Origin: Ophelia neglecta
Lineage: Eukaryota
Assembly (NCBI GenBank): GCA_965285935.1
Contig: OZ260664.1
Span: forward strand, 23,622,001 to 23,686,000
Length of the DNA: 64,000 nucleotides
Direction: 5' to 3'
Shown here: positions 31,801-37,333 of the stretch, piece by piece
Numbering within the stretch: the stretch's first letter is position 1
Layout: each line of letters begins with the position of its first letter
Made by a program: the position numbers and the translations under genes
The notes under the pieces: model-generated
Told to the model about the DNA's origin: nothing
What the model saw: the letters and a program-made list of their open reading frames with translations, nothing else
The model's database searches: none

Positions 31801-34800
31801 GGGGGGGGAGTGAGGAGGGAATTTTACTGGTAGAGGGGCCCCCTTTGAGGGGGGCAGGTCCATTTTTATGGTAGCAGTCTGTTGCTTCCACTTCTGACAA
31901 GTATACACCAAAGTCTGTATGCCAACATATGAATATATTAGATTTTAAGGTTTGATATTTTCCTACAATGCTAGCCTAGTCCAGTTCACCTGGCGCTGGT
32001 AGAAGCCCCAGCTTACCTTGTCTAACTTATCTACTGCAGAGCATATTGTCCTGAACTTATCCTGAGGAACTCCACAGGCAGCAAACATACCGTCTAATAT
32101 CCTTCTGTGATTTACCTGGGCCCAGCAAGAAAAATATGTCAGGTGGGTTTAAAATTGTTAATACACTTTTAAAGCATCAAACACACATGATGATGGGCAT
32201 TGCACTGGGGGACAGAGTGTAAAAGATTTAACACTCTTGGCTTGTGAAAATATTAATCATTATCTCCAGTAATTATTGTAAACAGATAGTTTCAATTTAA
32301 ATGTTAAATATGTTTTGTTATGCTATTTTTTAGGCTTACCTTAATTATATAGTCACCGATCTTTAAATCTGATAGAATTTCAGAGACAATTTTAACACAC
32401 TCTGAATCTGGCAGCATGGGGTCATACTGCCCCGCGATGTCAAAGTCCTGCAAGAAAACAGCGCAGGTGCATTTAGGTATAAATTACGGAAAGGCACTTA
32501 TAGTCAGGACATTTCTTACTAACCTGGAATCATAAATGACCTGTTAAATATGTTTTTCTTCTTACAATACATTGAAAACAGCAAAAAAAGATGACGATAA
32601 GGTTTTTAAGTAGTATTGCTGAAGTAGTAAAATGCTTACACATTGGTAGAATTCTCGGTATCGACCACGGGTCATGGCGGGGTTGTCCCGACGGTACACC
32701 TTGGCAATGTGGTACCTTTTAATATTGGACACTTTGTTCATTGCCAGGTATCTGGCAAATGGCACCTAAAACTTTGTCAAAGAAAACCAGTCAACCATTG
32801 TTTATAGTTATCTTTATGGTTGATATTTGCTTAGAAATGCACTTGTGTACAAACAGAGATTTATATTAAATTAAACACAAAGTTATTCAGTACTTATCCT
32901 TGGGAAATCCTAAAAGTTCATGTTAGTAAAATGGCTTATAAGTAGTGTGACTATAGATGAGATAGGTAATAAATTATGCACATCATCACTTGGGACATTA
33001 CTGGTGACATACACAGCATGAAGCATTGACAATAGTAAAACTCCGGAAGTCTATGTATGAAAAAAGGATACAGTGAGATCATAACGTAATGAGAGAATCT
33101 CTCCTCCCTGGTCAGCCAGATCATAGATCAACTTGGAGTCCTCCCCATACTTGCCAGTTAGGGTTTCCTGTAGAGAAAAAACTTGCACTGATCAACTGAA
33201 TTAGTAAAAGGGGCACAATAAAACCATTTGCATGTTTGTGTCTAAGTTAGCAAGGCCCAGTTGTTAGAATTAAGGGCAAGAAGTTTGTAAACATTATGCC
33301 AGGACCTGAGTAAATTACACATACCACTATACAGATCACTTGCATGTCTTACACGTGGCCACTAGCCGGATTATATCAACAGATCAAAGACAAACACATC
33401 TACTCGCAATCTACTTGTTTGTAATTTAAAAAAAGTTAAATACCAAAAATTTTAAAGTATGATGACACTTTATATAATTAAAATATGTAGAGCATTATAG
33501 ATTATTTGATTTAAAATCAATGATTAATTCTTCACACTTGGGTAAATAAATTTTGCCGAGTGTCATGTCCCCCTGATGAAGGGCCACGTGCTATGTAGGG
33601 CCACTTTTGCTAGGATGGAGGGGCGGCCCTACATCCCAGGGACTAATGTATTGCCAGGTGCTCACCTTGAGTTCAAAGACTGGGGTGTCTATAGTCTCTG
33701 CCCCGTGGCGTTTGAAAGTGGCGATTATGGTTTTAAACACCCTCTCACGTATTGCCATCTGTTGAGGAGTGTAGTCTCGTGTGCCCTGAAGCAGGAACAA
33801 ACAGTTACACAAGAATGACACAAGGCAATAAATGTTGTTAACATTACCATTAACATCATTATCATCACATTCTGTCTAGGTGTTTGATTTCACAGCAGCA
33901 TCTACACTTTCTGCCTAAAACTAATTCCATTGGCAAGTACCATTACCATGATTATCTTAGGAGGATTTAATTTCAAGATAATAATTAATAAAAAAAGAGA
34001 TTTTACAAACCTTGTTCCAATATAATGTTATCAACTTACAGTATATACATGTAGGTAATACCACTTTATTTCAGTTTCACAGTATGTCGACCAAATTATT
34101 CAATTAACATTTTAAAGCATTCATATCCTAATCAATAGGTGAAACCAAGGTAGACTTACCTTAGGCGTTTTCAGTACAAACTTCTTAGGAGCATCATTTC
34201 CCAACTGGGCTTTCAACTCCAATAATTTTGCAACTTCTTCTCCAATCTATTGGATTGAAATAAATCAATAAATTATATCAATGGTTTTTTTTTTTTTATA
34301 TATATGTGATAAATATATACACTTATACACTGAGTGCTCCTTAAACCATTAGTATGCTTTGATACTGTAGAAAATGGGAAAGTATGATTTAATGAATTGT
34401 ATATTGTATAGAAACAACCATCAAGTACTAATGTGGAGGGTTTATGTTAGAAATGGTCATAAAATCAAAGGCAAAAATACATATATAAATATGTATACAG
34501 TGAAACCTGCCTTAAAGACCACCTCTATATTCAGACCACATGTCAAATCAGACCACTCAGATGAAGACCGTATTTTATACTTTCAATGAAAAATAACCTG
34601 TTTAAACAAATCAGTATTTTCCAGTCTGTTGGGTGGTCTTAATTCATAGGTTTCACTGTATACCAAAAGTCAATAGATATCAAGATGAGCTGGTACCTGT
34701 TCACCATGGGTACAATAGAGTCGTTGCAGGACACGAGTGTGATAGCGACACAGGTTAATGTTTGATACAGGATGGGCCAGACGGCGTATCATTTGGGTCA

Positions 34801-37333
34801 GCATTGTTGTGGTGAACCAATCAGCACAGGTCAGTATGAGACACAAAGATCAGAGCATGGAAAGGAGAGAAAAAGTTTCCCTTTCAGCAAATCTGGTAAT
34901 AAATAAATGATAAAACAACTGCCAGATATCTGATAACCATCTACCACAGCTACAATATTACACTGGTCAATATTTCTATAAATGTTTTCTTTTTCATATA
35001 TTAAAACAAAAGTAATCCAGGTATTCAAGGAGATTTGTCAAGGGAATTTTTAAAGCTTCAAACAACCTTATTTATCACAAAAAATATTTTCTGCTACTTG
35101 CACAATGTATTTTCAAGATATTGTCCTGGTTATGACAATTTAACATCGGTAACTCAGGATTCATTTCAACAGAGGGAACATTATAATATATATATAACAT
35201 TAATAAATACATTCAATCTTGTTCAAGATTTAGCATTTACAAACCAAATGTTTTTTAATCATGCAATCAGTCACAATTCCATGAGCATCATGAACATTCC
35301 CTAAAAGGTGAACAGCTGAATTTAACTGAATGGTTTCAACCTCATTAGGGAACTGACCCGCTGTTTGTACAATGCTGGTTTTTCCTCCTTAAGCTTCTTA
35401 ATGTCCTCTCCTATTTGCACTATCTTTCGGTATAGTTTATATTGGTTATCCGAGTTTATTTGCACAACTTTAAGAACCGGATCTATGAAGTCTATTTCTG
35501 GAGAAGATGACATTTCAGGAGAAGTCCCTCCTGGAGACTCAGATAATGACGGAGAACAGTTTCCCTTATGTTTTTTTCTTCCCATCCTTGTAGATAATAC
35601 TGGTGTATCTTTTTATTAGTGACTATTCCCAGGTTGTGAATAAATGCTATTCTATAGCAACATTATATTTAGTCATCATATGGCGATGCTTCTCAGAGAT
35701 TCCGGCTGTACAAATCCCATAATGACAAGGATTACTAGTGCAATTCTTATAAATCCAAAACTTCATTTTAATAGTATCTAACTGTAATCTTCATAATGGT
35801 TAATAACATTTTGCAGTTTACTTACTATGACATCTGTTCATATGGCCCTTGAATTTTTAATACTTAACTGACTAGACTAGAAGAGTTTACAAACCAAATA
35901 AACTTTTAACCAGTCAATAAACAAACACATTTCCGTCCACTGCAGATGATTGGACTATCACAGGCAAAGAATGAACTAATTTGCTTGTATTCACTGCATG
36001 GTCCTATGTGATGGAAGGCACTGACAGATAATACTGAGAGTTTCTGAAATCCAATGAAAATCTGAGTCTTTCCAGCAGAAATCCTTGTGAACTACCTAAC
36101 ACTGTTGCATCTGTGCCAACAGAATATTTCCACATTTTTCGAAGATGTGAGGCTCTACTTTATAATGTACTTTCAGGTCAACCAGGGTAGCTAGTGATAA
36201 CACTTTTTGTTATCAGTGACTTGATAAATGAATGACATCAATGTCCTGTGTAAATTGCCTTCCAATCACCCTCATAACTCACAGGATCATATTATAACTT
36301 GATACAATCCCAGGTTTGAAAACATCCTCGGGTGGCAGGTAATTTTTGAAAACGCAAGACTTTGATTGCTGCTCACCCCAATGGAAGCAAACAAAGATCA
36401 AGTTGAGGTGCTCCTCACCGCTATACTTATACTTATATGCTGCTTCTTCTGCGCTGGAGGCTACTTAAAAATAACTTTTTTTTCCATTTTTATCACAATA
36501 TATGCAGTTTGTTGCATCATGCTCCCCTGTTATTATAGTAGGCCCACCAGAGTTGAGCCTTGAGCTTGTCATTTCACTTGAGCCATGAGGGGTTCACATG
36601 GACACAGTGTGGCTGGTCCCTGGCCGGTCAAGGTAGAAACTCTCAGTGCACAGGGATTCTATTGGTCAGCTCGGACAACGCCCACTAAGTTCTAAACCGG
36701 CTTTATATATATAGACCATATAGACTGGGTGGGCTTCAATATACATCGGCCTTGCATTCTGTTGCATCATCTGAGTGAGTTTGTAGGATACTTTTAAGTG
36801 TAGCTAAATGTATGTAGATTCTTATGTTTAGATTTACATGACAGTATAAACCGATTTCGCTACAAATCAATATTTCTTCACTGCATGCGTTAACCTGTTA
36901 ACAGTTCATTATTTTTGTTTATTTTTGTTTTGTCATAATTTCGTGGTATGTAGTACCACTCGCCTTTATAATCCATCCGATGTCGCTTGTATGCTGAATT
37001 ATAGTTTCACCGGCTCTCAGCTCTGTTTGGTACTCATCAGTTTACTTGTGACGCCTGCACTCATCGCAGACCGTGGGAGCGAATATTCCCAAGCAGTTGA
37101 CATTTCCTCGCGGCTTTTCTCAAACCAAAACACACGTGGAAACCATATTTAACCGTCAAATACGTTACCGATCTGCGGAGTAAGTACCCCAAAGATATTG
37201 TCCAAAGTCACACAGATATAATACTCAGACGTATGTTACCCACCTTATTTTTCTCAGCTTTGTCAGCTTTCAATTTCCTTACTATTTCTCCCTGTTGCTT
37301 GATGGCTTCTTGGATCTCTACTCGGTCCGCCAT
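28813..37333 (-). CDS. HARS: Histidine--tRNA ligase (histidyl-tRNA synthetase), cytosolic isoform, 513 aa, 14 coding exons
   Basis: Exons (minus): 37333-37244, 34246-34160, 33785-33666, 33167-33072, 32765-32640, 32447-32340, 32115-32017, 31599-31506, 31338-31211, 31023-30951, 30756-30647, 30221-30042, 29884-29738, 28896-28813; total 1542 nt, all phases consistent. Motifs: WHEP ([27 protein letters not shown]), LKTPKGTRD, LRYDLTVPFARY, motif 2 [18 protein letters not shown], HisA loop [16 protein letters not shown], motif 3 GVSIGVER, anticodon-binding domain. Confidence 0.97.
29399..29577. mobile_element. Short Tc1/mariner (Tigger-like) MITE in the last HARS intron
   Basis: TA flanks; TIR CAGTGA(A/T)ACCTG; internal GGTCACCTG repeats. 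Confidence 0.75.
32766..33071 (-). other. U12-type (minor spliceosome) GT-AG intron in HARS
   Basis: 5' splice site GTATCCTTTT; branch point TTTCTTTGAC about 11 nt upstream of the 3' splice site; no long polypyrimidine tract. Splits RYDLT|VPF. Confidence 0.9.
34498..34658. mobile_element. Short Tc1/mariner (Tigger-like) MITE in HARS intron 1
   Basis: TA flanks; TIR CAGTGAAACCT; same family as the copy ending at 57108. Confidence 0.8.
34697..34804 (-). CDS. HARS: HARS alternative first exon encoding a mitochondrial targeting peptide
   Basis: ATG at 34804; 36 codons [36 protein letters not shown] (Arg-rich, no acidic residue before position 35, R-3-like RLY|C). Ends CAG|gtacca in phase 0, matching the shared exon 34246-34160. 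Confidence 0.8.
35358..35585 (-). CDS. HARS: HARS putative third alternative first exon (basic N-terminus, SP-rich linker, alternative WHEP helix 1)
   Basis: AGGATGG Kozak context with an upstream in-frame stop; 76 codons MGRKKHK...[26 protein letters not shown]. Ends CGG|gtcagt in phase 0 and joins [15 protein letters not shown] to rebuild a full WHEP hairpin. Confidence 0.7.

Follow-up and report, generated by a model that had tools for sequence, protein, structure and literature searches.

The production of cytosolic and mitochondrial tRNA synthetases from one gene is well known, and in histidyl-tRNA synthetase (HisRS) the WHEP domain is the part of the enzyme tied to non-translational roles. 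In zebrafish, alternative splicing of a single gene, hars, has been found to supply both the cytoplasmic and the mitochondrial HisRS (Waldron et al., 2017, PMC5608375). The present analysis concerns a HisRS gene of Ophelia neglecta located on the minus strand of a stretch of 64,000 nt (assembly GCA_965285935.1, contig OZ260664.1, positions 23,622,001-23,686,000), hereafter called the window, whose own numbering is used throughout. In this gene, intron 1 (37243-34247) separates exon 1a, encoding helix 1 of the WHEP domain, from a shared exon 2, encoding helix 2, and two further ATG-initiated open reading frames (ORFs) are found inside it: the middle exon and, downstream of it, an exon resembling a mitochondrial targeting sequence (the MTS-like exon). 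An earlier note on this DNA had presented exon 1a and these two ORFs as three interchangeable first exons of a single gene, and all the exon coordinates, the ATGs of the three first exons and their phase-0 GT donors have been reproduced from the minus-strand sequence and its translations (Table 1). On balance, the best explanation of the locus would be that the middle exon is a conserved exon giving a third form of HisRS beside the cytosolic and mitochondrial ones.

Conservation of the middle exon

The comparison with a relative indicates that the middle exon is almost certainly a real coding exon. The same intron contains chance ORFs of 84-89 aa, including one antisense to the middle exon, and the case therefore rests on conservation and not on ORF length. 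In the genome of 762 Mb the exon is single-copy and is, therefore, no repeat. A phmmer search of 1.84 billion representative proteins identified one true relative, the orthologue P0002 (72 aa, E 2e-12, 59% identity to residues 19-76), the two other matches being internally repetitive proteins. P0002 is an ORF called on a contig of 557 bp (L003) from a metagenome assembly of the European Nucleotide Archive (ENA), presumably host DNA, and the contig stops 17 bases past the donor. The DNA of L003 is 28% divergent from that of the window: upstream of the ATG there is no alignment, and the coding part aligns with changes mostly at third positions (18, 12 and 39 differences at codon positions 1, 2 and 3, respectively). 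By Nei-Gojobori counting, the proportions of synonymous and non-synonymous differences (pS and pN) are 0.82 and 0.24 over all 64 aligned codons, and 0.89 and 0.23 over the last 45, with synonymous sites saturated between the two sequences. Because the antisense ORF has its third codon positions at the same sites as the sense frame, the frames were checked directly, and the sense frame alone was found to be open in both species. The antisense ORF (35365-35619, plus strand), which is open in the window, was rejected as a candidate since its frame has three stops in L003.

In both species the residues YKQR are followed by GT, and the protein similarity ends exactly there, the tails beyond this point (11 residues in the window vs VGDCGLI in the relative) being unrelated. 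Similarity that ends at a shared GT is predicted by a splice donor and not by a stand-alone ORF. Taken at the level of sequence, these data indicate that the middle exon has been kept under purifying selection since its split from a relative whose synonymous sites are saturated and whose flanks can no longer be aligned. The earlier note had named conservation of the ORF in relatives as one check of its proposal, and this is borne out by P0002, with its low pN and the same donor.

Further relatives of the exon have been sought by several routes. A word-indexed protein search with the middle exon, among candidates limited to 42-133 aa, gave no match, and the same search with the two-species alignment, under the same length limits, gave nothing new. 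A scan of JGI metagenomes by peptide patterns returned 599 pattern matches, none of which was confirmed, and a degenerate DNA pattern scan for further orthologues returned 0 matches. Among look-alikes in the ESM Atlas the best score was 0.88, with no family.

The window itself is polymorphic in this region. A contig of run X3 covering 35022-36226 represents a second haplotype, with 16 single-nucleotide polymorphisms and 6 gaps (~1.3% divergence), and zero differences fall in 35165-35616, the stretch containing the middle exon. This is a hint, small and post hoc, in the same direction as the conservation described above.

From the perspective of the encoded peptide, the ATG of the middle exon has an A at -3 and a G at +4, and an in-frame stop lies 30 nt upstream of it (35615-35613). 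The peptide is laid out as a basic cluster at residues 3-7, a disordered Ser/Pro/acidic stretch, a predicted helix at about residues 36-67 and then KPALYKQR. When the exon alone was modelled with AlphaFold2 from the two-sequence alignment, residues 1-35 were without structure, residues 36-67 formed a helix with a predicted local distance difference test (pLDDT) score of up to 94, and the end was a coil. The features conserved between the two species are the basic start (MGRKKHK in the window vs MRKRRK in the relative), the motif MSSSP(E/D) and the block Q(I/L)NSD..YK.YR.IV..GE.IKKLK..KP.(L/M)YKQR. The K-K-H-K and the four Ser-Pro sites to which the earlier note had drawn attention are present in the sequence. 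The pattern K-K/R-x-K/R, itself short and common, is found within residues 3-7, predicted to be disordered, as KKHK in the window and as KRRK in the relative. The idea of a phospho-regulated form is weakened by the finding that conservation extends to only one of the four Ser-Pro sites and that two of them belong to an 11-residue stretch absent from the relative. A nuclear or phospho-regulated role of the middle-exon form is at this point speculation. As to what the third form might do, entry into the nucleus by way of its conserved basic cluster and additional binding of RNA are guesses. N-myristoylation of the start MG was considered and rejected, since an Arg follows the Gly and the relative begins with MR.

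The host gene and its mitochondrial form

The locus is a class II histidyl-tRNA synthetase gene with its WHEP domain divided between exons. In Pfam, exon 1a corresponds to positions 1-23 of the WHEP-TRS profile (PF00458; E 2.2e-7), and the shared exon 2 to positions 25-41 (E 0.003), in agreement with its earlier reading as WHEP helix 2. Singly, each of the two exons is under the whole-domain cut-off of Pfam, as expected for half a domain. Downstream on the same strand, exon-sized ORF pieces match PF13393 (tRNA-synt_His) at positions 1-40, 39-74 and 248-275, in this order, and are followed by a piece matching PF03129 (HGTP_anticodon, E 9e-9), by which the identification of the host gene as HisRS is confirmed.

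Two HisRS core exons used as protein queries against the genome found this locus plus one weak match elsewhere (43% identity over 42 residues, E 0.001). This match lies between a kinase-like and an HGTP_anticodon2-like piece of a GCN2-like locus, the sole other HisRS-like sequence detected in the genome, in which each piece matches under the cut-off of its family and the order of the pieces is that of GCN2. The same pattern had emerged from the survey of zebrafish, where hars and eIF2AK4 were the sole matches (PMC5608375). The PF13393 profile itself, scanned against the genome, matched nothing, since single exons of this length fall short of what the family model needs. The view that there is one HisRS gene is thus upheld by core exons that are single-copy in 762 Mb, and the mitochondrial enzyme has therefore to derive from this locus.

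The MTS-like exon is the likely first coding exon of that enzyme. Its product contains five Arg and three His, and its one acidic residue is at position 35; the hydrophobic moment peaks at the N-terminus, and the ATG has an A at -3. The assignment stands mainly because one HisRS gene needs a mitochondrial form and because of the zebrafish precedent. Between this exon and exon 2, outside any exon and 34 bases from the MTS-like donor, sits an element resembling a miniature inverted-repeat transposable element (MITE). Its summed contig word depth is ~8e5, vs ~30 in the flanks, and its copy number in the genome must therefore be very large.

Other WHEP sequences of the genome and variants of exon 1a have also been recorded. 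At least five WHEP repeats, presumably the linker of a Glu-Pro-tRNA synthetase, are found on contig 1; each of them contains an intron that falls between profile positions 22 and 23, a site that, in the loop joining helix 1 to helix 2, precedes the border of HisRS exon 1a by two residues. In exon 1a, the second contigs of runs X1 and X2 show two variants, at 37249 and 37256, one being synonymous (GCT>GCC, Ala26) and the other replacing Asn29 by Asp in the loop that precedes the exon border.

Likeness to WHEP helix 1, the proposed third form and its rivals

In the earlier note, the middle exon was taken to carry a diverged second version of WHEP helix 1 that had arisen by duplication of exon 1. 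In favor of the likeness, hhalign of the two-species exon against an alignment of helix-1 exons from the same genome gives P 0.0013 and a probability of 18%, placing L51-A71 on I7-E27. The register is the one that had been proposed, with G59 on G15 of exon 1a; relative to this Gly, positions -8, -4, +3 and +6 are hydrophobic and positions +5, +7 and +10 are Lys. The score of 18.3 compares with shuffle means of ~8 and a shuffle maximum of 16.3, and was reached neither by any of 250 column shuffles nor by any of 250 shuffles confined to the helix; P0002 alone is placed in the same register with P 0.0055. Several results weigh against it. The middle exon has no PF00458 match in Pfam at E up to 10, and the PF00458 scan of the genome, whose 14 matches do include exon 1a and the repeated WHEP exons of the gene on contig 1, does not recover it. 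A hidden Markov model (HMM) built from the helix-1 exons that PF00458 matches in this genome ranks the middle exon 93rd-210th of ~1400 scored six-frame ORF pieces of the window (P0002, in the same scoring, 41st-91st). BLASTP of the middle exon against exon 1a returns no alignment, and the local alignment of their DNA is at the level of chance, 161 of 2000 codon shuffles reaching its score. The likeness to WHEP helix 1 suggested by the alignment is, then, weak and short of demonstrated homology: the expected register is found, and support from Pfam, the helix-1 HMM and BLASTP is not. For an origin by duplication of exon 1, the hhalign P of ~1e-3 is the sole positive sign. Such a duplication, if this is how the middle exon arose, would be an old one, with two residues more in the loop ahead of the junction.

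In the proposed third form, the donor at 35358 would be joined to the phase-0 acceptor at 34246, and WHEP helix 1 would be replaced by the basic cluster, by ~30 disordered Ser/Pro/acidic residues and by a Lys-rich amphipathic helix that, with the hydrophobic/Gly/Lys register of WHEP helix 1, may pair with helix 2. Exon 1a would give the ordinary cytosolic enzyme, and the Arg-rich MTS-like exon most likely the mitochondrial one. The transcript of the third form could start at the middle exon, from a promoter of its own, or could arise by inclusion of a cassette, as in zebrafish hars. Three AGs, at 35609, 35600 and 35587, lie between the in-frame upstream stop and the ATG of the middle exon, none of them in phase with exon 1a, and for this reason the new N-terminus would start at the middle exon's own ATG.

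The attachment of the middle exon to exon 2 of HisRS is probable. It is argued for by the position of the middle exon on the same strand inside intron 1 and by its phase-0 donor, compatible with the phase-0 acceptor of exon 2. Moreover, the ~1.1 kb from this donor to exon 2 holds the MTS-like exon and the MITE-like element and nothing else that would be a plausible partner, an independent gene would be one without annotated relatives, and the register resembling helix 1 is found just before the donor. Against these arguments, the donor is weak in both species, where a pyrimidine occupies +3, and the 557 bp of L003 are too few for the HisRS context of the relative's exon to be visible. Three sequencing runs from one sample cover 34100-37400 with contigs that cross the introns without splice joints; these contigs are DNA and constitute no evidence for or against splicing. 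Furthermore, no full-length protein with the N-terminus of the middle exon was found in the searches, in which length limits and clustering at 50% could hide one.

Other explanations of the same ORFs have to be weighed against a third HisRS form. One of them, a middle ORF that is open by chance in AT-rich intron DNA or derives from a mobile element, is lent some substance by the chance ORFs of 84-89 aa found nearby in the intron, and it is close to refuted by the single-copy status of the exon, by a divergence that is saturated at synonymous sites and low at non-synonymous ones, and by the sense direction being the only one open in both species; L003 as a contaminant from the same species is excluded by the 28% DNA divergence. 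It is improbable that the ORF is unspliced and gives either a small protein of its own, ~87 aa long and ending at the stop at 35322, or a regulatory peptide that has been conserved. Each of the two ORFs is indeed complete, with a stop 7-11 codons past the proposed donor, but the similarity ends exactly at the GT, the tails are unrelated in length as well as in sequence, and the GT is conserved at the same codon border in both species. A real exon could also open the coding sequence of another, small gene that is nested within HisRS intron 1 or overlaps it and has its further exons outside HisRS. Such a gene is unlikely, although position, strand and phase alone tie the exon to exon 2, no WHEP match is given by Pfam and no context by the contig of the relative. 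Annotated relatives would be expected of an independent gene with wide conservation, and the 1.84 billion representatives gave only the 72-aa exon ORF; the ~1.1 kb to exon 2 is already occupied by the MTS-like exon and the MITE-like element; and the weak match to the helix-1 register just before the donor fits HisRS. Same-strand genes nested in a 3-kb intron are rare. Should the middle exon belong to another gene after all, the finding would shrink to one unannotated conserved exon.

The remaining alternative touches the other end of the proposal, since there could be two forms only, the MTS-like ORF having arisen by chance and the mitochondrial enzyme being made otherwise, for example from an in-frame ATG upstream in exon 1a (37390 or 37384). 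This deserves somewhat more weight than a nested gene and is still rather unlikely. Of the ATG ORFs of the window, 7.7% pass the same charge rule as the MTS-like exon, and chance would place ~0.6 basic, acid-free ATG ORFs in intron 1; the search for an orthologue of the MTS-like exon found none; and exon 1a does have two upstream in-frame ATGs (ORF 37208-37390). The 19-residue extension that these would add, however, contains two Glu and would be a poor presequence, whereas the MTS-like exon ends on an in-phase GT and has an A at -3. A single HisRS gene needs a mitochondrial form, and the presequence of zebrafish hars, too, has an exon of its own, located after the WHEP exon and before the shared ones (PMC5608375).

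A third HisRS form carrying the middle exon is thus the reading preferred here, and what has been built upon it is far less certain. The three-compartment switch at one locus imagined in the earlier note is a conjecture. Its full version, in which three first exons give three forms, helix 1 being swapped for an anciently duplicated and diverged helix behind a nuclear signal, with cytosol, mitochondrion and nucleus served and the WHEP surface switched by exon choice, is doubtful.

Table 1. Features of the HisRS locus and related or neighboring sequences (window positions unless a genome position is given).
Feature	Position	Strand	Description
Exon 1a	37333-37244	minus	30 codons from ATG, WHEP helix 1; donor AAG|GTGGGT, phase 0
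Middle exon	35585-35358	minus	76 codons from ATG; donor CGG|GTCAGT, phase 0
MTS-like exon	34804-34697	minus	Candidate first coding exon, 36 codons from ATG; donor CAG|GTACCA, phase 0
MITE-like element	34493-34663		16-bp perfect terminal inverted repeats (GTATACAGTGAAACCT)
Shared exon 2	34246-34160	minus	29 codons, WHEP helix 2 and linker ending KTPK; acceptor aatag|ATT, donor AAG|GTAAGT, both phase 0
HisRS exon 3	33785-33666	minus	GTRDYTPQQ...PVFELK, start of catalytic core, phase 0; Pfam tRNA-synt_His positions 1-40
Remaining HisRS exons	28800-33200	minus	Catalytic core and anticodon-binding domain, from ORF pieces and Pfam matches; approximate span
GCN2-like locus (L007)	G000:C1:102104000-102113900	plus	Kinase-like, HisRS-like and HGTP_anticodon2-like pieces in order
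WHEP repeats (L004)	G000:C1:82986787-82993949	minus	At least five repeats
cGAS/Mab-21-like gene	44817-46157	minus	Intron-less ORF of 447 codons
Tandem array	22194-23062		17-bp unit (CCATGTCATAAACAACC), ~48 copies, 154-bp higher-order period

As for the surroundings of the locus, the upstream neighbor of HisRS, on the same strand, is a cGAS/Mab-21-like gene recognized by its Mab-21 C-terminal domain (E 6e-18). Elsewhere in the window, the array of 17-bp units causes a strong dip in the GC skew and many repetitive ORFs on both strands.

Relation to described systems

In humans, HARS and HARS2 resemble the arrangement proposed here, in that a WHEP-bearing cytosolic form stands beside a mitochondrial form without WHEP helix 1, and differ from it in that mammals use two separate genes. 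In HARS2 the presequence is followed by a remnant of helix 2 and linker, as would result from a junction of the MTS-like exon with exon 2. For HARS and HARS2 we know of no third N-terminus of the kind encoded by the middle exon. A second parallel is offered by the N-terminal (WHEP) splice variants of human HARS and by the catalytic-null variants of synthetases, in which alternative mRNA processing alters the presentation of the WHEP domain and which serve as the basis of proposed non-canonical functions. In those variants the catalytic core is deleted, whereas here the core would stay and half of the WHEP domain would be exchanged. A search of the literature found no third conserved HisRS N-terminus replacing WHEP helix 1, and to our knowledge none that exchanges half of the domain has been described. 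If the proposal is true, a naturally occurring isoform in which the WHEP surface is altered and the N-terminus bears a basic tag would provide a direct probe of the role of this domain outside vertebrates.

The provision of cytosolic and mitochondrial HisRS by one gene is already known (PMC5608375), and so are alternative nuclear and mitochondrial 5' exons in other enzymes. Among the latter, human dUTPase (DUT-N and DUT-M; PMC10181998) and LysRS (KARS) are cases in which alternative first coding exons supply one enzyme body with either a basic nuclear signal or a presequence. The comparison with them is an analogy of mechanism only, and the localization of the third HisRS form is a proposal. 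The closest of the described systems is zebrafish hars, a single gene in which the N-terminus with the WHEP domain comes from exon 1, an extra exon downstream has its own ATG and a mitochondrial presequence, and the rest is shared. Zebrafish makes two forms, its extra exon being a cassette behind exon 1; in Ophelia neglecta, by contrast, a further conserved exon, which is not a presequence, lies between.

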